A stretch of DNA of 64,000 nt, taken from positions 806,001-870,000 of the forward strand of contig NW_026262700.1 in NCBI RefSeq assembly GCF_021869535.1, written 5' to 3'. Under the pieces are notes generated by a model, which saw only the letters and a list, made by a program, of their open reading frames with translations, made no database searches and was not told where the DNA came from. The DNA is from Mytilus californianus (lineage: Eukaryota). The translations under genes were made by a program, and so were the position numbers. Positions within the stretch are counted from its first letter, which is position 1, and every line of letters begins with the position of its first letter. Below are positions 2,758-51,173 of this stretch, in pieces.

Positions 2758-3720
2758 CATAAAATTGAAAATGGAAATAGGGAATGTGTCAGAGACAACA
2801 ACTCGAGCAAAGAGCAGAAAACAGCCCAAGGCCACCAATGGGTCCTCAAAACAGCGAAAAAATCCTGCACTCGGAGGCGGGCTTCATCTGGCCCCTAAAC
2901 AAAAGTGTGTATTAGTACAGTGAAAATGGACGTCACACTAAACCCCGAAACATATAAATGAACTAAAATAAAAAAATCATTCAAGACTAACAAAGGCCTG
3001 AGGCTCCTGACTTGGGACAGGCGCAAAAATGTGGCGGGGTTAATAGATATAGGAAGATGTGGTATGAGTGCCAATGAGACAACTCTCCATCCAAGTTACA
3101 ATTTATAAAAGTAAACCATTATAGGTCAAGGTACGGCCTTCAACACGGAGTATTGGCTCACACCGAACAGCAAGCTATAAAGGCCCCCAAAAATTACTAG
3201 TGTAAAACCATTTAAACGGAAAAACCAACGGTGAAAATTGGACGTCACACTAAACCCCGAAACATATAAATGAACTAAAATTAAAAAATCATTCAAGACT
3301 AACAAAGGCCTGAGGCTCATGACTTGGGACAGGCGCAAAAATGTGGCGGGGTTAATAGATATAGGAAGATGTGGTATGAGTGCCAATGAGACAACTCTCC
3401 ATCCAAGTTACAATTTATAAAAGTAAACCATTATAGGTCAAGGTACGGCCTTCAACACGGAGTATTGGCTCACACCGAACAGTGAGCCTATATAAAAACG
3501 AGAAACGAGAAACACGTATGAACTACATAAACAGACGACAACTACTGTAATCAGATTCCTGACTTAGGACAGGTGCAAACATTTGCAGCTGGATTAAACG
3601 TTTTAATGGTACCAAACCTTCTCCCTTTTCTGAAACAATAGTATAACATCACAACATAGAATAACACACTATAAAAGATCAATTGGAAGGCTTAACTCAA
3701 TCAAAAAACGTAGGTTAACA
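2758..3720 (+). repeat. Composite interspersed repeats containing a near-identical direct duplication of about 250 bp (period about 311 bp)
   Basis: GTGAAAAT(T)GGACGTCACAC...CACACCGAACAG occurs at 2920-3170 and again at 3231-3482. Confidence 0.8.
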
Positions 3721-4797: not shown

Positions 4798-5036
4798 CTA
4801 AAATAATAAAAAAATGAATAAAAATTTTAAAATACGAACATTTATAATTCATATCGTTTATATTGTATTGAACTATAATAAGATTTGTTTGTACAGCAGT
4901 TATTCTCTTGCTCGTATGATATCTTTTCAGTTCGCACATTTCTCATGTGAAAAGTGTCAGCTATTACTATTACAATTGCTATTGCTTTGGACTAATATGT
5001 CGGTGTTGGCTAAACTGAAACAATATCTTTGCATAC

Positions 5037-5657
5037 CTGAACTTTTCTTTGGTTAAATCTAGACTTTTAACTCTTCGTTTATTGTTTTCTATTTCTTTAA
5101 GTTTCCTTATCTCCACTTCCTTGATTCTATGAAGCATGCGCATGTCTTCCTCTTCAATGTGGCGTTTTAAATTCATAAAACGACGCTTGACATGTTCTCC
5201 TTTTTTCAACTTTTGCCATTCATCTTCTATGATACGTTTGTATATTTTTTCGAGCTTAGCATGACTTTGTAAATCGAGTTTCTGAATATTTTGGGACAGG
5301 GCGGTGTTTTGTTTCGTGATTGAATGTTCAGTTTTTCGTGACCGTTCACTTTGCCGAGATCGATTCGTATCCATTCCCAGACTACGATATGCATCTCTTC
5401 TATTTCTTTCCACATATACAGTATGCAAATGTGTTTCCAAGTTCGCCAGCGGCCCAGTCCAAAAACATTTTTTCCATTCACATCGTACAATTTTCTGGTT
5501 TATACGATCTTCTAACTCGACATTCTCACGGTAAAGTCCATCCACTCGGCACATTGGACAGGAACCATGAGAAGCTTGGTAACTCCATCTTGTTATGCAG
5601 AAATGACAAAACTGGTGACCATTTTGACACTCATGGGGCTGCCGTAAGATGTGACAA
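5037..5657 (-). CDS. RING/coiled-coil gene 1, coding exon 2 (rest of RING-HC, TRAF/SIAH-like zinc finger, coiled coil)
   Basis: Acceptor ttcttgtag|T at 5657, donor cag|gtatgc at 5037. Encodes CHILRQPHECQNGHQFCHFCITRWSYQASHGSCPMC and VRCEWKKCFWTGPLANLETHL. Confidence 0.85.
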
Positions 5658-7420: not shown

Positions 7421-7671
7421 ATGTTTTATAACTGATATTTCGAATTCTCCCGGTCGTTAATTAACCCCCCTGCTCTCAACGTTCGGAATGTACAAATACA
7501 CAACAACTTCTGATCAGAATAGGGTCGTTAAATACGATTATTATTCTCATCTATAAACTATTACCGTTGGATTGAACTAGTTTTTCATAATTGTGAGTAC
7601 TCTGAGATCGGTTAGGTATGTTCTATATAGTTGTGTGTATCTGGTACCGATCTTAGGGGTCTATATAAAGA

Positions 7672-8130
7672 TAAGGAGATGTGATACGATTGCCAATGAG
7701 ACAACTACATGTATCCACCAAGGTTCAAATGAAGTGGACGTAAGTAATTATAGGCAATCAAACGGCCTTCAACAACGAGAAAAAATCCAGACCGTACGGT
7801 CGGCTTTAAACGGCCCCGACAAGAAAAATATGAAACAATTCAATTGAGAAAAATAACGGCCTAATTTATAACAAAACGATTTAAGAAAAAACAAAAATGA
7901 CAGACATGAACCAACTACAACCATTGAACTACATGCTTCCGACTTGGGACAGGCCCATACATAATGTGACGGGGTTGTACAGGTTTGTAAGAGCTCAACC
8001 CTCCAATAGCCTGGGACAGTGATATATAACAGTACAGCATAAGAACAAATTATAAAAAAATTATTTGAAAAGGATTGACTTATCAGATGGAAACAAGTAG
8101 AAATGCATCTAACAAAAACACACAGTTGAC
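7672..8130 (+). repeat. Interspersed SINE-like repeat (same family as 1960-2308)
   Basis: AAGGAGATGTGATACGATTGCCAATGAGACAAC...ACGGCCTTCAACAA...GACTTGGGACAGGC. Confidence 0.7.
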
Positions 8131-9388: not shown

Positions 9389-10697
9389 TCAACGAATAAA
9401 GGTTGACGATTTATCAGATATATTGCCCATTAGTTTTTTGAAAGCGTCCTTGATTCTCTGTTGTTCTCGTTCTTTTGCTTCCAATTCAAATTTCAGTAAA
9501 GTCTTTGCTTTCTGTGACATTTCGGCTTCAACTTCCGGTTCCGGCTCTTTGTCGCTGATATTTTGTTTGAGTTCCTTTTTCTTCTCTCTGATATCTTGTA
9601 TCGCATCAATCATTTTATCCGTTGCCAATTCTTTCTTACTAGACATATTTCTTATTCTTTTCCACATATTTTCGTCTTCTTTCAACTTTTCCTCGTGCAA
9701 AACCCGTTGTTTTCTGAAAAATGCTAGCTTATCTTTTTCGGCTTTTAATTTAACATCGGCAATGTTTTCATGCATGTCTGATCCTAAGCCACCTTTTGAT
9801 GTTGATACGTTTGATATTCGTGATTTTAAGTTTGATATATATTCTTGTTTCCATTTTTCATCGTTTTGTCTGTGCAAAGAAAATATTTTTCTCCTTCTTT
9901 CGATTTCTTGCTTAAATTTTTCATTTCGCTGACGAAGCATCTCTCTCTGTTTAATTTTCTCACGTTCAAGGTTATTTATTCGTTCTGCAAGGAATACTGC
10001 ATCCTGTTCAAATTGGCGCTCTACACTGCGAAAGTGATGCAACGAATTTTCAAGTTTTTGTTGTCTGTTTCTGTCAATTATGTGCATGGCATGTTCTGCA
10101 TTGACGCTTGCTATGGTTTTCTGTCGTTCAAGTTCATGGACACGTTTTTCCATTGCTTCGACTTGTTCTTTATTTTTCTCTTCTCTAAATTTATTTTCTT
10201 TTTTTATTGCATTTAATTTCCTAATTGCGGATTCCATTAGCTGCTTTTCTCTCTCAAGAGCTTCATTTCGTTCCTTTTCCCTCGCTCTATGTGTACGCGT
10301 TTGAACATTCTGAATCCTTGTTGAAAGAAATTTCATTCTTTCGGCCATATCTTTCTCCATTTTCCTTATTTTCCTACTCGCTGCTTCATTACTATCTCTT
10401 TTTCTTTTTTCTAATTGGTTAATCCTCAAAGACAGAGAACTTGTATTATGTTGCTTATATCTTTCCAATCTTTTTGCACGATCTGCTAATAACTTTTTAT
10501 CTCTTTCCTCCCGTCTGGTTTTCTCAAAAGTACGATTTTTGTCTTTCCGAAATTCCTCGTCCTTTTTAATAAAATCATCAATAAGGACCAATAATGCTAA
10601 CCTATTCTTTGTTCCTATTTGCTTCCATTGTCTCTCATTTTCATGCAAAGATCGCTGTAAAAACATCGATTGTGCTTTCTTGCTTTGATGGCAAAGC
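9389..10697 (-). CDS. Large coiled-coil exon CC-A (K/E/R-rich, 18-residue repeats)
   Basis: 451-codon open frame in the ORF track; acceptor tttccctttTAG|G at 10697 (phase 2); first in-exon ATG at 10666. 18-aa register: LRINQLEKRKRDSNEAAS/RKIRKMEKDMAERMKFLS/TRIQNVQ. Confidence 0.75.
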
Positions 10698-12909
10698 CTA
10701 AAAGGGAAATATTTGATTAGATATATATATGTTGTGTATATCACTGTTTAGTTTCGACAACATTTATAACATGGAGGACAATGCTTAATGTTAGCTTGAA
10801 GTATATAAATTTGTGAGTAAAAAATCAAACTGGATAATTACTGAAAATAAACTTGAATCACCTGGTGAAAGAAGGTGTGCGTCAAAATACTGATATCTGG
10901 TACAAAAACCCTGTACAAATTATAATTTGTACGCAGTTACAACTTGTACATAACATATACATTGTTTATTTGAAAATGTTGTCTTTAGTTCGCTCATATT
11001 TATATTAACTTATATGAATAGTTACGTAAACAACATATATTCTGAACTTACATTTTATAGAATAAAAACAGTATCAACTACCAATCTATCTTAACTCACG
11101 TGCTCGTATATATGAGGACAACAAAATCGGAAATATATATTTAATTAGATTTTATGAACTACCATTATTTACTCAATGTCCAGCGGCAGATGTTTCATTG
11201 AATTTCAGAACGATATTTAAGTATCAATAAATTCAAAAGATAAGTAATAAATTGAATGTCCCTCTGGTATCTTTCGTCCCTCTTTTATAAAAAAAGAAGA
11301 CCGACTTTTCCATACATTTTTACCATATATAATGATAATAATTATGTTTTCACATGACAATTGTCGTTTTATGCGCATAAGATGGGATTATTTAACATTC
11401 TTAAAAATATCGTACAAAACACTCGGTAAAAACTTTAACCAAAAATGAAATGATTCAAATTGCAGACAGTTGCATTTTTAAAGCAGGAAAAATTAGATAA
11501 CACAACTTAACGATAAAGACAAAAAGTTAAAAAAAATCTAGTAAAACTTACCCTAATCTTAAAGATCTACTAAGTATGTAAATGACAGTCCGTGTGATTG
11601 TTTATTAATTTTAAGGTGTACAAAACACGTTTGTAATTATATTTTGTCCTTTTGTCGTAACTCAGGTCTTTTGTATATTATATTTGTTGTTTTTAAATTG
11701 AATATGTTAATGAGAAATTAAAAAAATCAAAGAACGTATTGTTTTCAAATCAAATATCTTAATAAGAATAAGAACAGTTGATTCAAATAAGCATCTGTAT
11801 CAAACCGATATTTTATCTTAAAATTTTTAATTATTCATGTCGCTATTTGTACCACCTGCCATGTTTGTTTTGTTTGTTGCTGAAATCAATAGGTATGATT
11901 TTACGTCTTAGTTTACTCTCTTTAGAAAACTTTGTTTTAAAGTCATCAATTTAGCGGAATATGTTACAGATCATATTTGAATGCTTGAAAGGGTGAAAAC
12001 TATATACTCCTGGGAACCTAGTTTGTTTTGAAACATTAGTATTCAAATAAAATCTTAATTTACCTATCTTATTCAGTTGAGCAATTTTATGATTTTTTAA
12101 ATGTCAGTTTTATCAAAGAAATTGATACAAAGTTAAATTTTAGTAGTTCTACAATTTTGTACTTGTATAAGAAAAACACATAGTACGAAAATGATTAAGT
12201 AGTAAAAAAAATATATATTTAATATTAAAAAAAGATGTGGTATGATTGGCAATGAGAAAACTCTTCACAAGACCAAATGATACCGAAATTAACAATTTAA
12301 GTTGATCGTAAGGCATTCAACAATTAGCAAAGCTTATACGGCATAGTCGGCTATAAAAGGCCCCGGAATACGAAACGTAAAACAATTCAAACGAGAAAAT
12401 AATATACAAAATTAACGAACAACAAATATGTAAGACAGCAACAAACGACAACCACTGAATTGCAGGCTCCTCATATGGGACATGCACATACATGTACATA
12501 CACAATGTTATATATAGCTACAAAAAATATTACAGTTTATCCCATTTCTTGATATTTTGAAAACTCATATTGTACATATTACGAAATATGTGAATGATGA
12601 TTTCTTTTGTGAAGAAAAATATTTATCAAATTGTTTACATTTTCAATTTGACAATAGTTCATCACCATAAATAAAGTGATCTATACTAATATTCTGTAGT
12701 AAAACAAAACTCTTACAAACGAAATTATCATAATTATTTCCCTTGATGTGATTTAATTGAGTATATGCGTTTGTAAATGTAGTTATTCACTTAAATCAGT
12801 AAAGTATGCGATAAATTGAGCTTCTTCTCGTTTTGTTACTTACAATGTGTTCAATTTACACGTTTCTCTATCATTATGTAAGAATAAATGTTAAATCATT
12901 ACACATTAT

Positions 12910-12965
12910 ATGTTAATATATTTGCTGGTTTCTATATGTGTATTCGTAATGTATACATATATAAA
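12910..12965 (+). promoter_or_regulatory. Putative type-3 Pol III promoter of ncRNA-1 (PSE-like motif plus TATA)
   Basis: ATGTTAATATA at 12910 (about -79) and TATATAAA at 12958-12965 (about -31) relative to the stem start at 12989; same spacing at the two paralogues. Confidence 0.6.
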
Positions 12966-12988
12966 CATATCCAAAGCATGTTTCAATT

Positions 12989-13261
12989 GGAGATTGAAAG
13001 AACTGTGTCTACAGAGCGGTTACTTGGATGTGTTGGTGTTTAACAAAACGTTTAGCAAAACGTTTATTACACTACGATACACATGTGTACTGAAATTGAA
13101 AGGCGACAAGGCAACTTTCAACATTAAGCAGAGAAATACATATATGTCTCCGATCAAAGGTACATTGCAACTACAAGCAGACGTATGCTACAGTTATAAG
13201 ACAGTGAATGCCAAAGCTTCGCAAGGTCATACTGAGACACGGTGATTTCAAATCTTCTTTT
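12989..13261 (+). ncRNA. Putative structured ncRNA-1 (about 270 nt), unidentified family
   Basis: 5' arm GGAGATTGAAAGAACTGTGTCT (12989-13010) pairs with 3' arm AGACACGGTGATTTCAAATCTTC (13235-13257), including G-U pairs; TTTT at 13258-13261; internal hairpins such as TTGAAAG 13096 / CTTTCAA 13115. Confidence 0.65.
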
Positions 13262-13879
13262 ATTTCGGGAAAAAAACGTGATGAAATTTAAACAAATGTA
13301 TATAGTTCTATACATTTAACCATACAGTTATATGACATTCTTATACAATACTAGTTGATCCTTTATGTAGTTACTGTTGTTTTGTATAATAAAAAAGGCA
13401 ACTTATGCCCAACTATATTTTCAAACTCTATTTCTCCGTCCAAACATGTTTCGAAACGATAGTATGTTTTATACACTACATGTACGTTAACGGATATCAT
13501 TTCTGTTTATTTATTTTATATATGAATGTCATTGCGGAAATGAAAACACACATTACTATTTTCGATTGCGAGATGTTATAAGTACTACAACTGTTCTATA
13601 TATGGATTGATACGTATCAATAGAGATGACAAGGATATTGTGTATAATGACGAACTAACTAACGAAAGCTTAATATGACGAATTGTACGAAACGGGAGCT
13701 GCTAATGAATACATTGGACACACAAACTCTGATTTAAATTTAGTAATTTTCATCGTTTGCATGTAGTTTAAAGAAGATAATACCTATATCTATATATGAT
13801 TCCTCACATAAATAGTTCAATGTTTTCCACAATAGCAAATGATGCACTTGATATCCCAGACTTTTTTTGACAATATATT

Positions 13880-14165
13880 CATAAAAAGTGAAATAACAAA
13901 AATACCGAACTCCAAGGCAATTTCTAAACGAAAATTCAAAAGGCAAATGACAAAAAAATCAAAAGCTCAAACACATCAAATGAATAACAACTGTCATATT
14001 CTTGACTTCTTACCGGCTTTTCATATTAAGAAAATGGTGGATTAAACCTGGTTTTATAACTAGCTATACCTCTCACTTCTATGACAGCAATTTAAAAATC
14101 CATATTATTCACAACGATGTTTGAACAAAAACAAACAGACATGATAGGTAAAAATGTCAAAATTA
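13880..14165 (-). repeat. Interspersed repeat family B, reverse orientation
   Basis: Reverse complement of the ...AGAGGTTTAGCTAGCTATAAAACCAGGTT...AAGAAAATG... element at about 17960-18200, 24545-24810 and 34200-34565. Confidence 0.65.
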
Positions 14166-14609
14166 TAAGATTGATGATCAATGCATACATAACTTAACGA
14201 AATTGTGGAAACTTTTAAAAAGTTAGGAAAAATCTAATTATGATTTGGTCTATTTCTTTTAGGAGTAGGAAACATCTGAGTTTCTCTTAGTTATTCTGCG
14301 TCCCTACCTTGAGGAAGGCAAATAAATTCAAAAGACATGAAATGTTCAACCCTAACCCTACCCAATCATCAAATCGTCTAAATGATCAATCATATTATTT
14401 GCTTTCCGAGTGTTTTAAGAAATCAATGCTATTGTAAATACATTTACTAATTATTTAAGATTTTATCAAACAAACCATGCCAGAAGAAGCATGTTGCGGT
14501 CCATAAATATTTCCTAAAGGAACGGGTCATTAGAGTTAATAAATTTGAATCCTATTCAGTATGGCTAGAGGTATAGGGGGATGGTTTATATCTCAAAAAC
14601 ATGTTTAAC

Positions 14610-14897
14610 CCCCGCCGCATATTTGCACCTGTACCAAGTCAGGAGCCTCTGGCTTTTGTCAGTCTTGTATGATTTTTAATTTTAGTTTTTGTGAATAATT
14701 CAGAGTTTAGTATGTCGTCCATTATCACTGAACTAATATACATATTATGTGTTTAGGGGCCAGCTGATGGACGCCTCCGGGTGCGGGAGTTTCTATCGCT
14801 TCATTGAAGACCCATTAGTTGCCTTTGGCTGTTGTGTGCTCTATGGTCGGATTGTTGTCTCTTCGACACATTCCCCATGTCCATTCTCAATTTTATT
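14610..14897 (-). repeat. Interspersed repeat, reverse copy of the 2758-3040 element
   Basis: Ends ...GACACATTCCCCATGTCCATTCTCAATTTTAT, the near reverse complement of ATAAAATTGAAAATGGAAATAGGGAATGTGTC at 2758; partial copy at about 30680-30777. Confidence 0.7.
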
Positions 14898-16216
14898 AAT
14901 CATTGCATCTCTTCTCTTAATATCCAAACTTAAAAATGTTGTTCTAGTAATGGATATAAAAATAAGGGGTTGTAAGTCTAACAGATTTTACTCAAAACAA
15001 TGTACGGCATAAGTAGTGGTGATACATATACTTAGTGGTATAAACATAGAAAATCCAATATTCTAATACATAATGATAATCTAAAAATAATTATAAAAAA
15101 GGAAAAAAAGGCTGGTGTACCCGACAAGCGCATGTGGTCTTTTTGACATGAATATTTTTTCTTTTAAATAGTAGAACGTCTTTATACAAAACCAGTTATG
15201 CATTTTGTCTAGGAAACTTCAATAACAAAATTATTCATTCACTCTTATGACCAGGCTTTTACACTAAAATAGTTGCCAAGATTAGAAGTTGACAGATATG
15301 ATAAAGAACTATTTGCAACAGAAATCATTTTTTATTTGAAACAAAACCTTTTTGATTCTTTTTTTTTCTTTTTTAAACGGAGATATTTGTTTGTCTGAAT
15401 CTTGAATACCTAAATGAAAATACAGAGCAAGCATACGATCCAACAAGAATAAAGTTATAAATTATTTCTGCATTCATATTTGATTGAACATTGCACAATT
15501 CATCGATGCACTCGAATATTCATATAAGTGATGTACATTTTATTTGAAATCAACAGTTGCAAACAACAACATTCTATCGTAAGAAAAGTAACACGTTCTG
15601 AAACTTTTAAACGTCTTATTTTATGCTGTCCACTCAGATATACCCTTTAACTCATTTATTGTCGTATAGATATCTATTGTCATTTTATTGTCCATGTCAA
15701 TCATGGATAATAAATACAATACAATACAGTTGTTACCTGAGAGGGAGTATCTCAAAGATTATCTCAATTCAAAATATTTTTACACCTTTTGCAGGATCAT
15801 AAAATAAATGCCAATACAAATCCAAATGGTATTTTGTCTTATTGAAACACAATATGCATTCAACTTTTATGCATGCCAGGCCTCAAAACTTTTTAAACTG
15901 CACAAGTTAGTATGTACACAGAGTAGATTTTCAGCACTTTTTGTCCATTTGTTATGATGAACCTCTAATTCGTTCGTCAATATCGTGGTGATCTCTACTA
16001 TAAGAAAGCTCCATTTGAAATGAACTGTATTGATTGACATGTACAATAGAGAAACTAAACATACCTGACAATAATTGGTGATTTTTTAAACAGTGTCATT
16101 AAGCAGAACATATCAAGTGAAACTCAACTGTTTGGAAATTTAATCATCTTTTGAGATCAAAAACAAAGTGCAGTGCAAAATCCCAAATACTCCAGTGGAC
16201 TACGTTTGTTTCGAAC

Positions 16217-16585
16217 ACTATTACCCGAGTTAAAATCTTAAATTATCTACAATGTACTGTCTCCGCTAATTATCTAAATAACGTGTTATAGTGATCTTTC
16301 AATTCTCGTTGTAAATTGTTGCTTTTATTGTTTAATCCATTTTGGTGGTGTCATTTGACGTGGCTCTGTACTTATACATTCCGTCATTGTGTTATTATAC
16401 TATTACCCGAGTTAAAATCTTAAATTATCTACAATGTACTGTCTCCGCTAATTATCTAAATAACGTGTTATAGTGATCTTTCAATTCTCGTTGTAAATTG
16501 TTGCTTTTATTGTTTAATCCATTTTGGTGGTGTCATTTGACGTGGCTCTGTACTTATACATTCCGTCATTGTGTTATTATACTAT
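16217..16585. repeat. Apparently perfect tandem duplication of a 182-bp unit
   Basis: ACTATTACCCGAGTT...GTGTTATTAT at 16217-16398 and again at 16399-16580. Confidence 0.95.
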
Positions 16586-16717
16586 GGTATATTTGTGTAT
16601 TCTTGTCTTTCGTTTTTGCTATTGTGTTTTGCTTATATGCCTTTATTTTTGAAAATATTGGTTTATTTTTATAGTGATTACAATTATGACACTGTTTTGA
16701 CTGCTGTACCCCTTATA

Positions 16718-17940
16718 GAAGTCGGTCATTTAAAGATGTATCAACTGTATCATATACGTTGACGTATACGCATCTGAAAATATACCAAAAAATAGTATGT
16801 GATCCCGAGCTTTATTTGTATATACTTTCAATAATGCAGATGAGCAACTGATTAATTTCTAATGATAGTACTAATATTTAATTGTGTAGCTGACTTAATT
16901 TTTGGAAAACTTCTTGAATGTGTTTACTTCAATTTCATATGATTTAAATGTCGTTTACTATATGGATTGATGGATATGAAACGTAACGCTATAATGTGTA
17001 TAACATTATTGACAGACATATATTCAAAGATATAAAACACATAGGCATCTTTTGTCAGGATTAGGACAGTGTGAAATTGTGCAGTCAAATCTTATGAAAT
17101 CTAGTCTTGTAATAACTTGTGAACATCCCAAGAAGATCTATAAAAATTTTGTTTTCATTCAAACATATCGATGTGCAGAATATTCACGATGTATACATTT
17201 CATCTTTACGGGCTTTAGAAACAGGACAAATATCGATATCATGGCTTATCTGGTTTTCTCCCGTTTCCATGTATTGATTTTTATTCCTTCTAAATTATAT
17301 CCCTTTCGGGTAAAATAAGCTTATACGTAAATTTCACTTGAACTGATTTCATATTAATAGCTGCACGTGAAACACATGTACATGATATTTTTTCACGTGA
17401 AATTTACTTGAAAATAATTAGGAAATATCGAGTTTTTGTGGAACATGTAACCTACTTTTAAAGTTATTCGAATACTTAGTACAGTTAACAGGCATGATAG
17501 GAGTGAATACGGTGAAGACAGTATATGTATCTATTAATCATTTATGAGAAAATCGCAAAGGAACAATATTCATAGTTCCTTACATGTATATAAGTAATAC
17601 ATTTGATTTTTTGTGTTTATTTGGGTAAGATCTTGCAATATTTTAACGTGTTTTATAAAAGCATTTTGTACTAAACTCGTGTCACTGCCCCACATTCGCT
17701 CCTTTTCAAGAGCATGTAGAAGTCGTTGATATACCCTCTTTTTTGCAAAACACCATTATTGCTAATATTAAAAGTTTGTGTTTGATTGTTTTGAATAGGA
17801 TCCAATTAGATTAAAAAAAAAATAAGCACAACGTATAATAGTCTTCAGCTCGGGATCACATAATATTTTTTGGTATATATGTAGATGCGTATACATCAAC
17901 GTATATGATACGGTTGATACGTTTTTAAATGACCGACCTC
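16718..17940. mobile_element. Non-autonomous DNA transposon, TIRs of about 90 bp, TA target duplication, nested in a family-B repeat
   Basis: TA|GAAGTCGGTCATTTAAAGATGTATCAAC...GATCCCGAGCT mirrors AGCTCGGGATC...TTTAAATGACCGACCTC|TA. Rejoining the flanks restores the sequence seen uninterrupted at about 34262. Confidence 0.85.
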
Positions 17941-19466
17941 TATTATTGGCATTTTTACCTAATATGTCTTTGTATTTTGTTCACGCATTGTTGTTAATGT
18001 AATAGAGTTTTATTTTAAAGTAAGAGGTTTAGCTAGCTATACAACCCCGTTCAATCCACCATTTGATACACAAGAAAATGCCTGTACCGAGTTCGGGATA
18101 TGGCAGTTGTTTTTCCATCCATTTAATGAGTTTAGGTTTTTTGATTTTTGCCATTTCATGAGAGACTTTCCGTTTGGACTTTTTTTCTGAGTCCGGTTCA
18201 TCATGGAATCATTGAAGATGTGTGGCCAGCAGGAGTTAATCGTTCAAAGCATTGACATGCATGTGTTTATTTATTTATCTATAAACTCAATATTCAGCCG
18301 AGGATAACATGAATTTGACTTTCAATATTTTGGTAATCCTTTAGACTCTCTTTCATTGTTCGAACGACATGCATCGATTGTTATTAAGTAAATACCTATC
18401 TAGTTCTTATGCTATTTTACACAATATTTCTTAGGCCAGACTAGACCGAGTTGTCCGTTAGATTTACAAGGCGATGCTGGAGGACACAAAATGATCATTT
18501 AAAATTCACTTATTTTGCTTTAGTCCTTTCAAATTTGCGTTTCTTAAAGTTAGATTTCTTCTAAATTTAATATATATGATTTAATGGTGTCAATTTATTT
18601 GATTAAACACTTAAAATGATTAGAAATCATACTTAAAACACATTTTTGTTGCTGATCAGACAAAAATTAAAAACAGAAGTGTTTAAACTGAACATCTCTC
18701 TTCAATAACATTATTTTGAATTTTAAAACAAAACATAACTAATCCGTATACATAAAAAATGCATGAATTTCCCTAGCTATTCATGTACCCGGTAATATAT
18801 AAAGATAGTAGTCATCCTGAGCTATAAATACCTTTATGTACAGGTATCAATAAACAGGTTAGAACCAGTCACTCAAATGTTCAAACCAGTAGTTATATTC
18901 ATATCACATTATTAAATCAGCCATCCAGTCATAGCAATACATCAGTACGTTGAAATTATGAAAACCTTAAAACCATATTAAGGCCTTTTACTCTTCCTTC
19001 GTGTATTTTTTTATCGTTACATTATATTTCCCTATGCATTTGTTTGCCAATAAAAATTATCCCAACACTATTCAATTATAATTGTTTTCAAAAAAACATA
19101 TAGTAAGAAGATAATTTATCAGCAAAAAAAGATTTTTACAAAAATATATTACAGTTTAAAACACAATTTCCAAATATTTAGACTCTGTTTGTAAAATTCA
19201 TATTGTATAAAATAAAAATATATATGTGACTTGATATTTCTTTTGTGAATACCACAGGTAAAAAAAAATCTTTAAAACAAATTAACAGAATTACCTCCCG
19301 TGATATGCATTAATTTAGAATATTGGTTTGTGATCGGAGTTATTTACTTTAATCAATGGAATATGCGATACATTGAGCTTGTTCTCGTTTTGTTGCTTAA
19401 ACAATACACAAGTTACACGTTTATTTATTTTCAGGATAGTATAAATGTAAAATCAATTTATAATAT

Positions 19467-19523
19467 ATGGTAATATAATCCCTGGGTTTCAAAATTTCTA
19501 TTCGTTATGTATACTTATATATA
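19467..19523 (+). promoter_or_regulatory. Putative type-3 Pol III promoter of ncRNA-2
   Basis: ATGGTAATATA at 19467 (about -80) and TATATATA at 19516-19523 (about -31). Confidence 0.6.
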
Positions 19524-19546
19524 CATTTCCATCGCTGAAGTTAAGT

Positions 19547-19726
19547 GGAGATTGAAGGAACTGTGGCTAAAAGTTCACCGATAATAAGGTTGTTGATATG
19601 GTCATGAACATGTTGCAACATGCGGCGACATCTCAGATAATGCGCAATCTGAGTGCAGTTATTGCGGGCGTAGGCTAAACTATTGCACGAAAAACTTAGC
19701 CACGGTAATTTCAGATCTTCTTTTTT
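19547..19726 (+). ncRNA. Putative structured ncRNA-2 (about 178 nt), paralogue of ncRNA-1
   Basis: 5' arm GGAGATTGAAGGAACTGTGGCTAA (19547-19570) pairs with TTAGCCACGGTAATTTCAGATCTTC (19696-19720); T6 at 19721-19726; internal hairpins CATGTTGCAACATG (19609) and CTCAGAT-N8-ATCTGAG (19632-19653). Confidence 0.65.
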
Positions 19727-20704
19727 CGTCAGAGAAACGTTATATTAACAAATCTAAAGTCACCATGTATAATTGCCACGGGAAATTGGATTCACATGAT
19801 ACAAGAAGATAGGAGAAAAATTGTAAACCAGGTACGAAGTTTTTTAACATGTTCAATCTAAACCATTTTAACTGTTTTTTCTGCATTTACCGCTTATGAA
19901 ACGATTTTCAGATATATAGTGCCTGAAGTTTTTTTGCCAACCAGTAGCAAACAATGACAAATTTTCTGTTAGACTCCAAAACATTGCACTTGGTATCAAA
20001 AGTATTTCCGGACAGCGTCTTGTAATATACTGTGATGTAAAGGGGTACTTACTATATAATGAATAATAACAAAGATGATATGATGTCCATATCAATGCGT
20101 TACCAGCTACCAAATTGACGAAGTTAACCATCCAAATTATTTTGGCTTATAATTCCGATCAAGCTGGTGTTAGGGACCGTCATAAACTTGCAGTAAAGTG
20201 AGAGTTTATTATTTTTATTTTTTTATCCGTGATGAAGACTTAACGATGAATTCAAGATGAAAAACAGCAACAAACGCGTTGTTCCTTTGCTCTTTGTTGG
20301 TTTTATGTGTGCTAGTTAAACATAAATCATTTAGTCAGTTCCTGATAAGAGAACTTGCCCTTTAGTGACTTATTTTTGCGTTTTTGTCTTTTATCTGAAA
20401 AAAAATAATAAATAGATTAGAAACTTTGACAATAAAAAAAAACTGTAAGACATGTTCAACATAAAATTCAAATTGCTGAAATCGTCAGTTCACTCCGTAT
20501 AGGAGTTACCACCCTTAAATGACGGTTTTCTATTTGTTTTTTTGCTTTTGCCTTTAACTTAAAAAAAATATGATATAATTCTATAGTTACAAGCCTCTAA
20601 ATAATGGATGGCTATGAAAAAAATCTAGAAAAATGTTTTCGTCAATTCAAATTCAAAAAAAAAATATTTTCGTTGTCACACATTTCACAAAACAAGTATC
20701 TTAA

Positions 20705-21093
20705 GGATGTTTGCTTGTCATGTTTTGGAATTTTTGTCAGATTTTCGAAATCCTCTGGTTTTATCCATTTGAATGCCTTAAAAAAATTTGCCCATGGACC
20801 CCCATTTTTCTTTTTATAAATCTTTTACATGAATAATTATAAGCCATTTGTAAAAGTCTTACAAAATCTTATTTATTTTTTAATAGTTTTTGAGAACTTT
20901 AACTGGTCAATGATAAAGCTATGAAAAATCAAATGAGAACATTTTCCCGCCAAAATTCCAATGGCTAATATCTCGAAAACAAGCACATTGGCCCCTATAT
21001 TTTTTGACTTTTTTGATTCCTCAATTAATCCCCTATCAATATATACTAGTGTTATGGAAAGCTATCTATTTTGAAACTGAGCAGCGAACTTCC
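20705..21093. mobile_element. Non-autonomous Kolobok-like DNA transposon (TTAA target duplication)
   Basis: TTAA|GGATGTTTGCT...AGCGAACTTCC|TTAA; about 390 bp; second copy at 40488-40877. Confidence 0.8.
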
Positions 21094-22936
21094 TTAAACC
21101 GTTATGTGCAGTTCTTAACGCAAATAAGTTCCATTTAAATACCATATTTTCAATACATATATTTTATTAGACCTGACCTTGCGGTCATAACAGTTCGAGC
21201 ATAATTATTGCAATCAGACTTGAGAATTCAAAAATACTGGATTTGATGCTTCGAGTACAAATTTTGTAATCTGTACTCAGAGACAAGTTTTATCTGCTTG
21301 AACATTTTTACTTCAGATATTAGTTTTGTTTTTTTTAGTTTTCGTGGCTTTAATGATTGCATTATATAGCGAATACACATACATTTTTAGACTCACTAAT
21401 TTTTTTTTCATATGTTTTTTTATTACAAAAAATTACCTTGGTTTCATTTCATGTTGATGTTTGACTACTCATTAGTATTTGTATTTTCTTTTTGGTCAGT
21501 TATTTTATAAAATAGGTAAAATCGCGAAACAATAACGAATTTCAGGTGTGATCGTTGCCCCTTAATATATAGCAAATGCCAATATTATCAACCAAAGCTA
21601 CAAGAACTCAGAAATAAGATTAAGAGTGATAATGGTAAATGTAAGAAATAATTCCTTCATGGCATGATTCATGTTCATTTTACATAAGATCGTCAATATA
21701 TTTATTCCGAAAGCAAGTTTTTGCAGTGGAACAAAGAAACAGCTGAAATAACTGTTTTAAGAGGAATAAATAATTCCAGCTATAAGGTCAAAGTTTAATG
21801 TATTATCGTCTGATAATATTTCAGTCGGCGATTGTATGTAGAAAGCCGAATTTCTATTGAGTGGTCCCGCAGTTCATGTCGCTGCATTCGGAAAAATTTT
21901 GGCAATACCGATTACGGGAAGACATTATTCAATAGCATTATGTTTGTTAAGATTGTAATTAGATAAAGGATTCTAATTTCAAAAGTCTATGTACAATTGT
22001 TTCACAGTAAAACTAAGTCATTCAAGTATGAAAACATTTTGTTCACCTATAAGAGGAAAACAACGCAACAACAGAAACACTGAAATGCAACAAAAACTAA
22101 CAACAATGCAACACACATAGGAACGAACTATAAGATAACAACTGCCATACTCCTGACCTGGTACAGGTAATAATATAATTGTATACCATAAGCCAATGAG
22201 GAAATTAGGATTTCTTAAGTACAAAAAAGTGTATCGATTCAGTATCTTTTAACTTTTTAGTTAAGTCAAAATCATAAATAAAGGATTCTAATTACAAAAG
22301 TCAAAGTACAATTGTTTTATAGTAAAACTAAATCATTCAAGTATAAAAACATTGTGTTCATTTTGAAGTGTCATATGACGCTATAGGAACTAAGATTACA
22401 AAAAAATATATGACTAGATATCATTTGATAATGTTTAATAGCAGATATGGGATAACTGACATCTGTGGGGAAACACCTTAATAATGTTAAAAACAATGTT
22501 GGCAGAATTCGTTATAGCAAATCTATTATTAAAAGTATGTATCTTCAAATATACTATTGGTGTTGCTTGAGGACATTCAATTGTACTATGCGTTCTTTTT
22601 TGAAGGCCATATAATTGTATATCCCGTCATGATGAGGAAATTTTGATTTCGTATGTAAAAAACGTATCGACTAAGTATCATTTAACTTTTTAGTTACTTC
22701 AATATCATAAATAAACACGCCATATTTTTAATTGTAAACAAAAGAATTAAAAAAAAAATGATTTTCGCCCTTAATGAGTTTTAATTTAATTTTTTCATAT
22801 TTTTGTTAGGAAAACTTTATAACTGAATTGTATGATTTAGGCTCGTTCTTTTCTATTTTTGTCTCGTTTTCAATGATATACTATTGTCTTCTTTCTTTTA
22901 GTTTTGATAAAATGTTGGAAAAGTATTACCCGTGAT

Positions 22937-22992
22937 ATGGTAATATAAATCAAAGGCTTGATGAATTTATTCATAGTATTTACCTATATATA
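22937..22992 (+). promoter_or_regulatory. Putative type-3 Pol III promoter of ncRNA-3
   Basis: ATGGTAATATA at 22937 (about -79) and TATATATA at 22985-22992 (about -31). Confidence 0.55.
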
Positions 22993-23015
22993 GTTTTCAA
23001 TATAAACTACTAGTT

Positions 23016-23307
23016 GAGATTTAAATCACCATGTCTATGGTCTATGACATACTAATGGTGGCTCCACGATAACAAGCATCCAAGCCTCTGTTTCGAGATT
23101 GGGTGTGATACTAAGATGAGTCGCAGGTGGTTTAAATGTATGACATATGAATCTGCAAGCACAATGCCACCCTCCTGTAGATTGATTTGTTAGACAAAGA
23201 AATCACTTATCGAGATCCAGTACATGTAACTATAGATGTAACGCGGTATTCATCTGGTGCGGAGAACTGAATTTTACTGAGACCTGGTGATTTCAAATCT
23301 TCGTTTT
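23016..23307 (+). ncRNA. Putative structured ncRNA-3 (about 290 nt), paralogue of ncRNA-1 and -2
   Basis: 5' arm GAGATTTAAATCACCATGTCT (23016-23036) pairs with AGACCTGGTGATTTCAAATCTT (23280-23301); TTTT at 23304-23307; several internal hairpins. Confidence 0.6.
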
Positions 23308-23451
23308 ATCGAGAATAAACTACCTTTAACTCTAAACTCAGTTCTTCGCGCAATATAATTTAAATATTTTGCAATGGTCATGCTGTTTATATTTGAAACA
23401 ATAAACTCTTTTAACTCGCCGTGTAAACATAGTAAAACAGTAGAAGCGTAA

Positions 23452-23764
23452 AATCCTGGTATTTATGATGAGTTTATATGCATTGGTGTTAAAGAACTTC
23501 AACTGGTCATATTTATAAATTAACTGTTTACAAAACTTTTGAATTTTTGAAATACTAAGGCTTTTCTACCTCAAAAAAAGATTACCTTAGCTGTATTTGA
23601 CAAAACTTTTAGGAATTTTGGTGCTCAATGCTTTTTAACTTCGTACTTTATTTGGCCTTTTTAACTTGTTTGGATTCGAGCGTCACTGATGCGTCTTTTG
23701 TAGACGAAACGCGCGTCTGGCGTAAATACAAAATTTAATCCTGGTATCTATGATGAGTTTATAT
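23452..23764 (+). mobile_element. Retrozyme-like / Penelope-derived monomer with a minimal type I hammerhead ribozyme motif
   Basis: Direct repeats AATCCTGGTAT(T/C)TATGATGAGTTTATAT at 23452 and 23737 (period 285). Motif GCGTCA-CTGATGC-GTC-TTTTGTA-GAC-GAAAC-GCGC-GTC-TGGCGT at 23680-23723. Confidence 0.7.
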
Positions 23765-26210: not shown

Positions 26211-28568
26211 TTATGCTACTGATATGTCTGTACTGCTAGTCTTCATCATTTTATCTATCCTTCGTTGTACCTCTGATATTCTTTGATCCACTAGAAACAT
26301 GCTGGGATAACTATTTACAGAGAGATTTGTTCTTGGTTTTATTGGAACAGTTAGTTTTTGTCTCCTTTCACGACGGTCTTCTATGGTGGAACGCTTAACA
26401 TTCTCCATTTCGTTATTTTGCAACGTAACTCTCGTTATTTGTTCTACAGTGGTTGTTTTTGGATCCTCTTTTGTGTTAGGATTCCGAAAACCTTCTTCTA
26501 CTTCAGCCGATTTACCAAAGCGATGTTCTGTTTTGGTGTCATTTTCAAGTTCTTTTATTCTAGTCTTTAGTGACACTTTTGTATTGACTGCCCCTGTTCC
26601 CATCTCCGGTGGTTTAACCTGAGTTTTGTCTACAAGAAGTACATTTTTAGTAGTGGGGAGGTTCGGTACATAATCATTCGTTGTCTTTTTATCTGTTTTC
26701 TCCTTGTTTTTACTCTCGGTTTCATCGTCTCCCGTTCGTTTCGGCTTTTTAACTGTAGAAAATAGAAACTCGTAACGTTCTTTCTGATCGTTACTCTTTA
26801 AAATTTGCCCTTCTTTCATTTTTGAACATTGATTGTTAAATTTTGCATTTTCCTCGTTATATTTGTCACTCTTCGGTTCTATACCTGTCGTTAGTGATTG
26901 TTTGCTCTCTGTAAACTTGTTTTCGAAATGGACAGTTTTATTTGTTATACTATCTTTCGCGATTGAGAGAGGCTTAATACCCATAATTTCCTCAACTTCC
27001 GGTTGTCTGAGTTCAAGACTTTTTGGAATCAGCGGGTCAGATAATGTGATAATTTGTTTCCTCTCTTGTAAACGGTTTAGTGAGTTGAAATTACCAGTAG
27101 GTGTTTGAGTTAAATTTGGTTTAATTTGTCCAGGTTTTGATGTGTCCGTTCGACGTGAATTGTTTGTACGGACGGCATGATTGTACATTTGAATTGGGTT
27201 TTCGTTTAATTTCGTTGGTTTTTCTGCAATATCCTCTATTTTTGTTGCTTCTGATTTCTGTTCAAATTCTACTTTGGGATTCTTCGTTTGTTTCATAGAA
27301 GTATTTTGATCGGAATGATTGTTTATTCTGTTATCTTTACGGAGATTGTTGGTATTATTACTACTTTTTTGTCTTTGCGTTTCTGTGTTTTGTTGTGTTT
27401 TACCAAATTCCGCTTTGTTTGTAACGCTATCGACTTTGTTGAGATGAAAAGTTGTACTGACGTCCGTATCGGTTTTTCTAAAGGTGTTTAGGGTTGTTTG
27501 TTTTACTGCATAATTATTCTTTTGTGGAACATAAAAACGTTGAAACCGTTCTGAGTTGGAACGTCGCACTATATCTGTCTGTGACGTAAATTGTTCTGAT
27601 TTTACAACGGGTTTAGTAATACGTTGTTTTTTTGCGCCTATTCTAGGTGTAATTTTCTTTTTGCCTACGTCAAGTAAAATAGGATCTTCTTCGTTTACAG
27701 TGGACAAAATCGTCTTGACAACGCGATTATTTATTGCCTTTTTGTTCATGTTTTTATGCAATTGATCTTTTCCACTAAGATATGTCTTGTTTTCCCATTC
27801 TACCTCAACCTTTCGTTGAGATTTATAAACTTTATTGCCCTCTCCTTGTTTTGACTTTTCAAGCGACTGTTTTTTCTTCTCAACTGTCTTTCGTCCAATT
27901 TCCCAAAGCTTTTTACCAGATACTTTCTTCCCACTTTCAATTCGTCTTGCGGCCAGAAGTTTGTGTTGCCAAATCATACGCTCCTGTACAATCTTCTTCT
28001 CAATGTATGATATTCTGCGTTCAGCTTTTACAATATCTTTATTTCTTTCCTGTTCAGCGGTTGTAACTCTGCGCATAAACAGCTTCCGGTCCTCCGCGTG
28101 TTTCTTTTCTATTGTTTTAATTCGTTTTTTCGTCTCCTCTTTTGACTTTTCCGCTCTTTTTTCGATATTCTCTATATTTTTGGCAATTATCTTTGATTCC
28201 TTTTTAATGTGTTCTTCCATCTGTCTTGTGCTCCTATTAGAAAGAGAAGAACTCAGTCTTTTCCTTTCCTCAATTTTTCGTTCTCTTAACTTCAATTTTT
28301 TCTTGTTTGATATTTTCTCTTTTTCGATATTTTGAACATACATTTCCATCAGTTCTTCGTCTTTTTTCATTCTCTCCTTCTCTTGCTCTTTCCAAGCTTT
28401 TTCTTTTCTTTCAGCAATTTCTCTTTTATGTAGTTCCTCTTGTCTGATATTCCAGGCTATACAAGCTTGGAAAATTTGTCGTTCCTTCTCTGTCTGTTTT
28501 TTGCGCTCTTCAATTTTCTTACGGTACAAAATGTCAACAGCATTACCCATGGCAGCTTTTCTATCCAC
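26211..28568 (-). CDS. Large coiled-coil plus low-complexity exon CC-B (first ATG at 28550, 779 aa)
   Basis: 785-codon open frame; probable acceptor ttttcgacag| at 28619. N-terminal 18-aa repeats (KNIENIE.../KRIKTIE.../RRVTTAE.../RRISYIE...ERMIW), then a T/N/K-rich disordered tail. Confidence 0.8.
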   Translation of the reverse strand: MDRKAAMGNAVDILYRKKIEERKKQTEKERQIFQACIAWNIRQEELHKREIAERKEKAWKEQEKERMKKDEELMEMYVQNIEKEKISNKKKLKLRERKIEERKRLSSSLSNRSTRQMEEHIKKESKIIAKNIENIEKRAEKSKEETKKRIKTIEKKHAEDRKLFMRRVTTAEQERNKDIVKAERRISYIEKKIVQERMIWQHKLLAARRIESGKKVSGKKLWEIGRKTVEKKKQSLEKSKQGEGNKVYKSQRKVEVEWENKTYLSGKDQLHKNMNKKAINNRVVKTILSTVNEEDPILLDVGKKKITPRIGAKKQRITKPVVKSEQFTSQTDIVRRSNSERFQRFYVPQKNNYAVKQTTLNTFRKTDTDVSTTFHLNKVDSVTNKAEFGKTQQNTETQRQKSSNNTNNLRKDNRINNHSDQNTSMKQTKNPKVEFEQKSEATKIEDIAEKPTKLNENPIQMYNHAVRTNNSRRTDTSKPGQIKPNLTQTPTGNFNSLNRLQERKQIITLSDPLIPKSLELRQPEVEEIMGIKPLSIAKDSITNKTVHFENKFTESKQSLTTGIEPKSDKYNEENAKFNNQCSKMKEGQILKSNDQKERYEFLFSTVKKPKRTGDDETESKNKEKTDKKTTNDYVPNLPTTKNVLLVDKTQVKPPEMGTGAVNTKVSLKTRIKELENDTKTEHRFGKSAEVEEGFRNPNTKEDPKTTTVEQITRVTLQNNEMENVKRSTIEDRRERRQKLTVPIKPRTNLSVNSYPSMFLVDQRISEVQRRIDKMMKTSSTDISVA

Positions 28569-35310: not shown

Positions 35311-36333
35311 CCATATTTATTCTGTGTTAGAAACCTATTCTTTGTCAAATATTTAATCCCATTACAAATTTAGAGCTGTTATAGCTTGAATGTTCTGTCC
35401 AAACTTGCATTTTTTCTTCATCTTCCACAAAATTTGTCCTTTTCTGAGATAACTGGTGTTATCTTTTTAAATGAAACTTTAGTGAAAAGAAAAGCACAAT
35501 ATGTGGATGATTATCTGATGTCAAACATTTTCAAGATGGCCACCAATGATGGCACAAATTTCAACACTGGTTAATTTAATGAAAATTGTTAATTAGGGAT
35601 AGTCGTGGTAGTTTGACTTGCTAAACAAAGTAAGGTTGTTTTTTCTTCCAAAATGGCAAACATTTTTAAGATGGCCTTATATGAAAATTGACATTAAGGA
35701 ATTATACTTTTGACATGCCAACAAAACAATGAAATTTTTTTTAAAGATGGACACAGCAAATAAAGGGTAAAATTTTCAATTTTGTTGAGTTTGATTTTAA
35801 AGAATATTGATATTTAGCTGTACTTTGACACAGAGAACAGATATAAAGATGGCCACCATTTCAAAGATTGTCACTAAAAGCGGTCAAATTATCACCATTG
35901 TCTGTTTTCAATGTAAAACTATATTGAGAGGTAATTTGACGTGCCAAACCAAATGGAGGCAATTTTTATTGTTGTAAAGATGTTAAAGGCTATTTGGACA
36001 TGCTTAAAAGGAATGGATAATAACTATTCTGCAAAAATGATTTAGCTTTAGTTGGGAGAATTTTGTAACTGTATCCACTTACAGTAAAAGTTGTCAATTT
36101 TATTTCCTGTCAGTGGTATATATGAAATTAAAAAATGTGGTATGATTGCCAATGAGAACAAATGACATAGAAGTAAAGCTATAGGTCTTCATATGCCATA
36201 TGGCCTTCAACAATGAGCAAGACCTATACTGCATATATATTCAGCCATAAAAGGCCCCAAAATAAGAAAATGAAAAAATATGAAAACTAACAGCTTGATT
36301 TATGTATGTATGTTTTGTGGTTTTCATATCTAG

Positions 36334-45447: not shown

Positions 45448-46324
45448 CTGAAATACGTAATATAAGGTATTTAAAGTATTAGTAACTGTTTTATCTTTAT
45501 GTATAGGAGTATACACAATTTGAATACTTTTTTCCCAAGTCTTCTCGAAATGGGGTGTTAAATCGGAGGATTCGTGTTGTGAGAGTGTCACCTTGCTAGA
45601 CGTTAAGGGACCTCAGTGGCCTAGTGGTCTAAGTCGTTCATATCCTTAAACCATAGCCTGTCAACATTACATATATCGAGTCAATTACCAATCCTCCATT
45701 GTGTGATACCTAATCACTTGATATAACTAAACAACGCAATTTATAAGACTAACACATCGCTTGTCACATGTGAAGCAGGATCTGAAGTGGGGTTGCTCAG
45801 TCTTTAGTTTTCTATGTTGTGTTTTGCAGAGTGCTTTTTGTCTTTTGGTAGTTTTTCGTTTTTTTGCTATGGCTTTGTTAATATAAAAAAGAAGATGTGG
45901 TATGATTGCCAATGATACAACTCTCCACAAGAGACCAAATGACACAGCAATTAACAACTATAGGTCACCGTACGGCCTTCAACAATGAGCAAAGCCCATA
46001 CCGCATGTAAGTTTATCTTCGAATTATGAGTTTGAATATCCCTTTATTATCTCATGCCTCTCTTTTAATTAACCGATTCATTGTTTTATTTTTTCGATTC
46101 CTAAATAAACAAGAAATATTTGTCCCTGAACGTTATGCACGAAACTTGCAATCGCAATCGTCTAAGAAAATTAATATACCAATGATCAATAGTTCTTCAA
46201 AGGAATAGCATTTGATCATATACTTTTGTAAGATCGCCGTATGATTTAATGTTGCTTTTCATACACGTTTTTATCAAATCATAAACTATAATACGATGAA
46301 GTAACCATGGTAAATAAATCTGAC

Positions 46325-46927
46325 CTTTTTTTCTGCTTGACATTTTCAATATCTTCCAGTTTTTGATAGAAGTTCCCTCTGTTAGTATGTGCTTGTTGCA
46401 ATGCAATCGCAGGCAATTTGTCCGTTTTCCTGTCGGTTATATCCGTAAGTGGTCGGTAATAGTCGGAACGAGAAGTGTTTGATTCTAAAGGAGGTAACGT
46501 CTGTGCGCTTTGCCTATCTAACACATTTTGTCTCTTAATCTTTTCCATCTTTTTTATCCGACGTTGGACAACCTCCTTTTTCAAATGGTGTATTTTGTCA
46601 ACCTCCTTAGCTACTTTGTGATATTCTATTCGGTCGTCAGTTGATAACGTGTCTCTCTCGGTACTAACGCTGGATTCTGACGAATGGTGAGAATCGGCAA
46701 CATGATGTTTAAGCCTTTCAAGTCTACCTTTCCATGCACACATAGAAGACTCGCATCGTACATATTTGCTCTCTATTTTATTTCTCAAATCAGTATTATC
46801 ACTGTACGTAGCCTGTGCTCCACAGGTAGGGCACGTTTTGTTCCCCCGTCTAGTCCATTCTTTGACGCATGACAAGCAATATACATGTCCGTTACAACAT
46901 TGTTGGGGTTGATTCAGAATTAATCGA
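46325..46927 (-). CDS. RING/coiled-coil gene 2, coding exon 2
   Basis: Acceptor ttttcag|T at 46927, at the same RING position as gene 1; RLILNQPQQCCNGHVYCLSCVKEW...CPTC and VRCESSMCAWKGRLERLKHH. Donor AG|gtcaga at 46325 is a weaker match. Confidence 0.8.
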
Positions 46928-50699: not shown

Positions 50700-51173
50700 G
50701 TAAGTTCAATGCAATGTTGCGATGACAAACTGACAACGTCATAGCAGAAAGCGAAAAAGACAAAACAACAGTATACGAACAGTACATAAATATAAGAAAT
50801 TGTGGTATGAGTGCCAATGAAACAACTCTCCATCCAAGTCACAATTTGTAAAAGTAAACCATTATAGGTCAAAGTACCGTCTTCAACACGGAGCCTCGGC
50901 TCGCACCGAACAGCAAGCTATAAAGGGCCCCAAAATGACTAGTGTAAAATAATTCAAACAGGGAAACCAACGGTCTAATCTATATAAAGAAACGAGAAAC
51001 ACTTAAGAACCACATCAACAAACGACAACCACTGAAAAATCATGTCTTAATTCTTATAAAAAAAAATTGTCCATCATTGTGATGAGCAGTGAATTTAACT
51101 CAAATAGACTTCCTTATTGGAAGCTTGTTTTGCTGAGTGGTCATGACAGGTGCCACGCACTGAGCAAGATATA

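Follow-up and report, generated by a model that had tools for sequence, protein, structure and literature searches.

A conserved gene-external promoter layout precedes three tandem cassettes of Mytilus californianus that probably encode small structured RNAs

We analyzed a stretch of 64,000 nucleotides (nt) of Mytilus californianus DNA (positions 806,001 to 870,000 of NW_026262700.1, hereafter the window), whose contig is JAKFGE010000049.1 of assembly GCA_021869535.1. Direct reading of the sequence revealed three related cassettes, all on the + strand, at 12989-13257 (c1), 19547-19720 (c2) and 23015-23302 (c3). Each begins with (G)GAGATT, ends in GGT(G/A)ATTTCA(A/G)ATCTTC and is followed by a run of T. 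Their upstream regions share a promoter-like layout, and the cassettes are candidate genes for small structured RNAs. The cluster is bracketed by two K/E-rich, coiled-coil, single-exon open reading frames (ORFs) at 9389-10744 (- strand, 451 amino acids, aa) and 26211-28568 (- strand, 785 aa). These have no Pfam domain, are 28% identical to each other over 131 aa, have orthologues in four other Mytilus species (76-90% identical) and are not visibly connected with the RNAs.

To compare the cassettes among M. californianus, M. galloprovincialis, M. edulis, M. trossulus and M. coruscus, we used the 10-kb flanks around orthologues of the two bracketing ORFs. Thirteen intact cassettes belonging to at least five paralogue lineages were found across the five species, with predicted RNAs of 174-358 nt over all copies. 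A syntenic copy of c3 was present in 5/5 species. The c3 start is probably G 23016, because position 23015 is T in the window and G in the other four species. The c2 orthologue was syntenic in M. galloprovincialis (86% identical) and truncated in M. trossulus; c1 was intact in M. edulis and present in M. galloprovincialis only as a truncated copy. Additional c1-like copies were cX and, in M. coruscus, Mcor_c1. A divergent fifth lineage, c4 (358 nt), lies at 14982-15339 (- strand) of locus L012, on M. californianus scaffold JAKFGE010000012.1. Its flanks align nowhere with the window although the adjoining gene is ~85% identical; c4 may stem from a segmental duplication or belong to a divergent haplotype. 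In L012, a related copy of the K/E-rich ORF (P0007) has a cassette ~3 kb past its 3' end. Decayed copies that had lost the TATA element or an arm were also present among the fetched Mytilus loci. One of them, a c3-like copy of M. coruscus (L006:21350-22070, - strand), has a nearly intact box and degraded TATA and 3' arm; a unit containing GAGTCCACGATAATA, repeated several times in tandem, enlarges its interior.

The features of the three cassettes in the window are as follows.

12730-12762, + strand: c1 distal block, ..ATTA..TCCCTTGATG..TTTAATT.., about -260 to -228, kept in all lineages including c3 and c4
12805-12837, + strand: c1 block at -185 to -153, conserved only in its 3' part (GAGCTTCTTCTCGTTTTG)
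12908-12920, + strand: c1 upstream box, ATATGTTAATATA, -82 to -70 from the G of GAGATT
12941-12956, + strand: c1 block at -49 to -34, TATTCGTAATGTATAC, kept in c1, cX and c2, partly in c3, absent from c4
12958-12965, + strand: c1 TATA box, TATATAAA
12989-13257, + strand: c1 predicted RNA, 269 nt, arms 12989-13014 and 13231-13257, fold -73.3 kcal/mol, z -3.8
13258-13265, + strand: c1 T-run, TTTTATTT
19286-19318, + strand: c2 distal block
19372-19404, + strand: c2 block at -176 to -144
19465-19477, + strand: c2 upstream box, ATATGGTAATATA
19516-19523, + strand: c2 TATA box, TATATATA
19547-19720, + strand: c2 predicted RNA, 174 nt, fold -57.5 kcal/mol, z -4.1
19721-19726, + strand: c2 T-run, TTTTTT
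22758-22789, + strand: c3 distal block, ..ATCGCCCTTAATGAGTTTTAATTTA, nearly invariant in five c3 orthologues
22840-22875, + strand: c3 counterpart of the -170 block
22935-22947, + strand: c3 upstream box, ATATGGTAATATA, with the ATGGTAATATA core invariant in five species
22985-22992, + strand: c3 TATA box, TATATATA
23015-23302, + strand: c3 predicted RNA, 288 nt
23303-23307, + strand: c3 end, GTTTT, invariant in five species

Reading of the letters together with pattern searches located the box core ATGTTAATATA at 12910 in c1 and ATGGTAATATA at 19467 in c2 and 22937 in c3. The TATA element was TATATAAA at 12958 in c1 and TATATATA at 19516 and 22985 in c2 and c3. The first G of the stem is at 12989, 19547 and 23016, respectively, which gives box-to-stem distances of 79, 80 and 79 bp, TATA-to-stem distances of 31, 31 and 31 bp, and 48, 49 and 48 bp between the starts of box and TATA. 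These results confirmed, for all three cassettes, the proposal of the initial annotation that a box ATG(G/T)TAATATA lies 79-80 bp and a TATATA(A/T)A element 31 bp upstream of the stem. By itself the box is common, with 13 matches at no more than one mismatch in the window against 10.9 expected at 30% G+C, and a fourth exact box at 37701 was rejected as a chance match with no TATA and no cassette behind it. The composite box-N33-42-TATA, searched on both strands of 216,894 bases of Mytilus DNA, occurred 13 times, each time before a GAGATT cassette. Two matches only to the composite plus GAGATT were obtained in 2.9 million viral contigs, and these were discarded as chance occurrences in phage coding DNA. 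The box was located at -79 to -81 from the G of GAGATT in every intact copy possessing it, and TATA(T/A)A(T/A)A started 31-32 bp before this G in 13/13 intact copies. When c4 was included, the upstream element consisted of ATATGGTAATATA followed by a weaker ..(C)CTGG.TT, spanning ~24 bp from -82 to -58.

Further upstream, the distal motif was found as TCCCTTGAT at 12739 in c1 and TCCCGTGAT at 19296 in c2 (-251/-252); the TCCC.TGAT motif described earlier is thus present in both, one base away from the coordinates first given. TATGCGATA was found at 12805 in c1 (-185) and at 19372 in c2 (-176). The earlier description of a shared motif near -180 therefore stands for c1 and c2, but the other species keep only its 3' part, GAGCTTCTTCTCGTTTTG, and the identical spacing claimed for the cassettes applies to the proximal promoter and not to TATGCGATA. 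By position only, the conserved stretches at -265 to -231 and at -170 to -161 agree with a distal enhancer (about -170 to -250).

The cassettes are paralogues, and the conservation footprint is therefore a fair test of the layout; its outcome was positive. Among the five c3 orthologues, 19/23 sites of the box and TATA and 38/53 sites of the arms were invariant, compared with 198/408 sites of the interior and downstream sequence (Fisher p = 0.001 for each, 1.3e-5 combined). The power of this comparison is limited because the surrounding DNA is ~80% identical among the five orthologues. Between lineages, identity of the lineage consensus sequences was calculated over 320 nt upstream, where the background was 0.3-0.6. 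The decamer at -80 to -71 reached 1.0, the best of the 320 nt, while -50 to -21 scored 0.8-0.9, and -250 to -231, -200 to -181 and -170 to -161 scored 0.7-0.8. The conserved upstream blocks stop at +1, and past +1 only the stem arms are common to the lineages. Within its non-aligning flanks, c4 retains the distal block, ATGGTAATTTA followed by ..CCTGG.., a TATA at -32, both arms and GTTTT, and it does not have the -50 block. Conservation of the layout across species and paralogues is far beyond chance. The results support a promoter layout that is external to the gene and has stayed fixed in at least five paralogue lineages and in five species.

Folding indicated that the first and last ~25 nt of each predicted RNA form a ~23-bp helix whose bulges are fixed. 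In the 12 copies counted, which exclude c4, every stem had 2-5 G·U pairs, and the arms of the + strand folded more stably than those of the - strand in 13/13 copies (-25.9 vs -17.7 kcal/mol for the arms of c1 alone). Four compensatory double changes were observed in the stem: U-A to G-C in the c2 lineage, G-C to A-U between c1 and c3, C-G to A-U in M. edulis c3, and U-A to C-G in c4. The stem is selected at the RNA level, on the + strand, since it carries G·U pairs, is more stable on that strand and has undergone these four compensatory changes. Two compensatory pairs were also found within one interior hairpin of c3; apart from this, the c3 interior changes as fast as the flanks and accommodates indels of 10-33 nt. 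The c1 interior is homologous to that of cX, and c2 has a 3' hairpin in common with both; the interiors of c3 and c4 share nothing with other lineages. No match to the cassette interiors was found elsewhere in the window.

Inverted ends of ~25 nt that enclose variable interiors are also expected of a mobile element with terminal inverted repeats (a miniature inverted-repeat transposable element), the arms being its repeats. We regard this explanation as extremely improbable. The copies are syntenic in five species, neither the composite motif nor the 3' arm gave further copies in the 64-kb window, and no target-site duplication was seen in the sequence around c1-c3. Moreover, the arms depend on G·U pairs and pair less stably on the opposite strand in 13/13 copies, and ~300 nt of one-sided upstream conservation lie outside the "repeat".

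At the 3' end, a run of T4-T8 begins no more than one base from the 3' arm in 13/13 intact copies, and each of the three cassettes in the window closes in a T-run. No run of T5 or longer was found inside the predicted RNAs of the 13 copies. Internal T4 runs numbered 8 against 13.7±3.4 in shuffled sequences (P = 0.057, 12 copies counted), a modest depletion; 61 lie in the 320 nt upstream, and the c4 RNA has none internally. A 111-aa ORF at 12910-13245 (+ strand) begins at the ATG of the c1 box and spans nearly the whole c1 RNA. It was taken as a chance ORF because it has no counterpart in c2 or c3.

These results suggest that the cassettes are probably small non-coding RNA genes with a gene-external promoter of the U6/7SK type (type 3-like) for RNA polymerase III (Pol III), although our confidence in this is moderate. 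The layout, its conservation and RNA-level selection on the stem are observed; the acting polymerase, the bound factors and the production of RNA we infer. Several observations weigh against this reading. No RNA from c2 or c3 was detected in the material searched; eight internal T4 runs exist, and the terminators of c3 and c1 are only T4; and a TATA at -31 also suits RNA polymerase II (Pol II). In addition, the box lies outside the 40-70 bp window of the proximal sequence element (PSE), and is separated from the TATA by 37-38 bp, or by 25 bp when its weak 3' extension is included; and -68 to -51 is poorly conserved, the weakest stretch of the proximal promoter between lineages. Finally, one M. 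coruscus copy is boxless through a 48-nt deletion (-88 to -41) and has kept the TATA, the arms and a T8 run. This copy may be a young pseudogene, because its stem is weaker (-14.6 kcal/mol).

RNA-seq data from the same species and study gave 0 reads on c2 and c3 in ~10.3 million reads (~6% of the run), and three contig sets contained nothing on c2 or c3. The missing reads are weak evidence against expression: the sample covers 6% of the run, and structured RNAs of 170-300 nt frequently drop out of cDNA libraries. Reads in 19250-23350 fell only at 20700-21100 and 22043-22084, on repeat pieces; identities of 95-99% and loose ends indicate that they come from other repeat copies. Exact-protein look-ups of ORFs within c1 and c3, aimed at RNA-derived contigs, returned no match. 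The loci might be untranscribed, either as conserved regulatory DNA or as slowly decaying relics of local duplication. The zero reads on c2 and c3, the flank-rate change of the c3 interior with its 10-33-nt indels, and the existence of decayed copies all fit such a history. We consider it very unlikely, since the stem shows compensatory changes and strand-specific G·U pairing, the boxes and arms exceed background conservation, and c4 retains both in flanks that do not align. Decayed-looking copies without TATA or arm are themselves expected if these parts are normally under selection.

The cassettes could instead be transcribed by Pol II from a TATA promoter, yielding a long non-coding RNA or a small nuclear RNA (snRNA)-type transcript, with the T-run incidental and the closing stem acting as a processing or stability signal. 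The position of the TATA at -31 is canonical for Pol II, and the eight internal T4 runs are tolerated. In plant Pol II snRNA genes, the spacing between upstream element and TATA is longer than in Pol III genes. Type 3 promoters can reportedly have Pol II activity (PMC6023835). However, T4-T8 lies within one base of the last paired base in 13/13 copies with no internal T5 or longer, the conserved stem comprises exactly the first and last transcribed bases, neither a conserved AATAAA nor a conserved ORF was seen, and there were no poly(A)-type reads in the RNA-seq sample. On balance, transcription by Pol II appears improbable, and a Pol III promoter remains our preferred explanation.

Searches for the identity of the RNAs gave negative results. 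No Rfam family matched any cassette, in the window at gathering thresholds, in 12600-23500 at E values up to 10, or in the orthologous loci. ARAGORN found no tRNA and no tRNA-like internal promoter in the window; no A or B boxes were seen by eye inside the RNAs, and no box B-like GGTTCGA occurred in any copy. By eye, none of the cassettes showed a telomerase-type CCCTAA template, conserved regions of RNase P/MRP or the 7SK GAUC hairpin, although these checks are weak. No U6, 7SK or U1 gene was found in the ~280 kb of Mytilus DNA scanned. A search of metagenome contigs for box, TATA and U6 core gave two plant-type U6 genes, which were rejected as chance matches to TAATATA, and the same search in contigs of bacterial and archaeal genomes gave no match. 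In the literature, we found no mollusc U6 promoter or PSE and no type 3 Pol III promoter described for any mollusc, and the cassette motifs were absent as strings from the papers searched. Two Rfam-type signals were observed in other loci: a below-threshold Hammerhead_1 match (30.2 vs 34 bits) between two cassettes of M. edulis (L007:4711-4754, - strand) and, at L009:20294-20339 (+ strand) in M. coruscus, a match to the histone 3' stem-loop (36.8 bits) with no histone ORF adjoining.

PSEs sit 40-70 bp upstream and distal sequence elements at -250 to -170, and Pol III specificity comes from a TATA located downstream of the PSE (PMC9652321). The TATA and distal blocks of the cassettes agree with this scheme. 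Of the type 3 architecture, the TATA at -31, the conserved box, the blocks near -170 and -250, a predicted start on the first base of the stem and the oligo-T end hold in five species, but the initial annotation's naming of the box as the PSE is unproven. That the -82 to -58 element is the mussel equivalent of the PSE is a possibility to which we attach limited confidence, somewhat short of an even chance.

Tentatively, and as a rather unlikely assignment, the -82 to -58 element may instead be the activator site of a compact promoter. This alternative is a fair one because in human H1 an essential octamer lies at -97 to -90 (PMC7949045). In the fuller form of this explanation, which is also doubtful to a similar degree, the promoter is external and served by Pol III, the -80 box is a POU/homeodomain-like activator site (ATG.TAAT), and SNAPc binds weaker sequence at about -68 to -35 (..CTGG.TT.., TATTCGTAATGTATAC). 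The H1 promoter offers a precedent, with a Staf site between octamer and PSE and all elements within 100 bp (PMC7949045). The usual placement of PSEs 40-70 bp upstream (PMC9652321) would likewise suit SNAPc binding there, identity between lineages is 0.8 in the -50 to -33 block, and the boxless M. coruscus copy retains everything else. ATGGTAAT agrees with the octamer ATGCAAAT at 6/8 positions. However, the -50 to -33 block is not in c4 and abuts the TATA, too near for known SNAPc-TBP geometry, and -68 to -51 is the least conserved proximal stretch. The box is also the strongest element, as is usual for PSEs among the snRNA-type genes of a species.

If the cassettes are Pol III genes as we favor, the TATA at -32 to -25 would bind TBP together with a TFIIIB-type factor and would thereby position the transcription start on the opening G of the closing stem. 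The ~24-bp element at -82 to -58, with ATATGGTAATATA followed by the weaker ..CTGG.TT, would be required alongside the TATA, and the blocks near -170 and at -265 to -231 would form a distal enhancer. Termination would occur at the T4-T8 run directly past the 3' arm. The predicted product is an RNA of 174-358 nt whose ends (~25 nt each) form the ~23-bp helix with a short U tail, leaving the interior free to vary. More speculatively, and with low confidence, the cassettes may constitute a lineage-specific, birth-and-death Pol III RNA family of mussels, in which selection acts on the ~23-bp end helix and U tail only while an interior of 120-300 nt is completely replaced from paralogue to paralogue. 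Such RNAs might serve as a new Y/vault-like scaffold or as an Exportin-5/Dicer-type substrate, and their promoter would supply the first definition of a molluscan PSE, displaced upstream by ~15 bp relative to its place in flies and vertebrates. If these proposals are true, the box, TATA, distal blocks and terminator could guide the design of vectors for small-RNA or guide-RNA expression in bivalves, and a new, fast-evolving structured RNA family present in at least five Mytilus species would become open to functional tests. If the box is a PSE, its long distance from the TATA bears on SNAPc-TBP/Brf2 spacing outside model animals.

Other features were observed in the window. A dispersed repeat resembling a short interspersed element, with the core GATGTGGTATGATTGCCAATGAGACAAC, is present in eight copies (3032-3101, 3344-3413, 7654-7723, 12210-12279, 36110-36179, 45870-45939, 50775-50844 and 61386-61439). 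Arrays of the palindrome TTCCCATGGGAA with a 21-nt period occupy 51347-51648 and 59466-59737, and a perfect 182-nt tandem duplication lies between c1 and c2 at 16217-16580. Two ORFs on the - strand, 46279-46941 and 4979-5554, gave weak, below-cutoff matches to Sina/RING zinc fingers.

Among known systems, the cassettes resemble the type 3 promoters of U6, 7SK, H1/RNase P, MRP and Y RNA genes in having all control elements upstream, a TATA that begins 31-32 bp ahead of the start, another upstream element that is strongly conserved and keeps a constant spacing to the TATA, conserved blocks in -170 to -265, a purine (G) as first base and an oligo-T end. They differ in that the element is centered at about -76 (-82 to -70, perhaps to -58) and not within -70 to -40, and its distance from the TATA (25-37 bp) exceeds the roughly 12-17 bp between PSE and TATA in fly and human. 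To our knowledge, the sequence of the box resembles no known PSE consensus. Compact human H1 (RPPH1) provides a precedent for an essential type 3 element at about -80 to -97, but its octamer/Staf enhancer adjoins a separate PSE, whereas the cassettes are without a second strong element between the box and the TATA region.

In architecture the cassettes come nearest to Y RNA and vault RNA clusters, although the features that define these two classes were not found. Vault RNA clusters likewise comprise three tandem paralogues with a terminal stem and a variable center; unlike the cassettes, vault RNA genes have internal A and B boxes, the cassette RNAs are longer, and no Rfam Vault match was obtained. 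Y RNAs are also shorter (~70-115 nt, against 174-358 nt for the cassettes), and no Y_RNA match was found in Rfam even at E values up to 10. The cassette stem (GGAGAUU.AAA.. / ..UUUCAAAUCUUC) is without what we take to be the Ro60-binding helix. In organization, however, the cassettes resemble Y RNA clusters: several paralogues, spaced by a few kb, have external promoters of their own, and the ends of the RNA pair in a long, conserved, bulged stem with a 3' U tail, while the interior is unalignable between paralogues.

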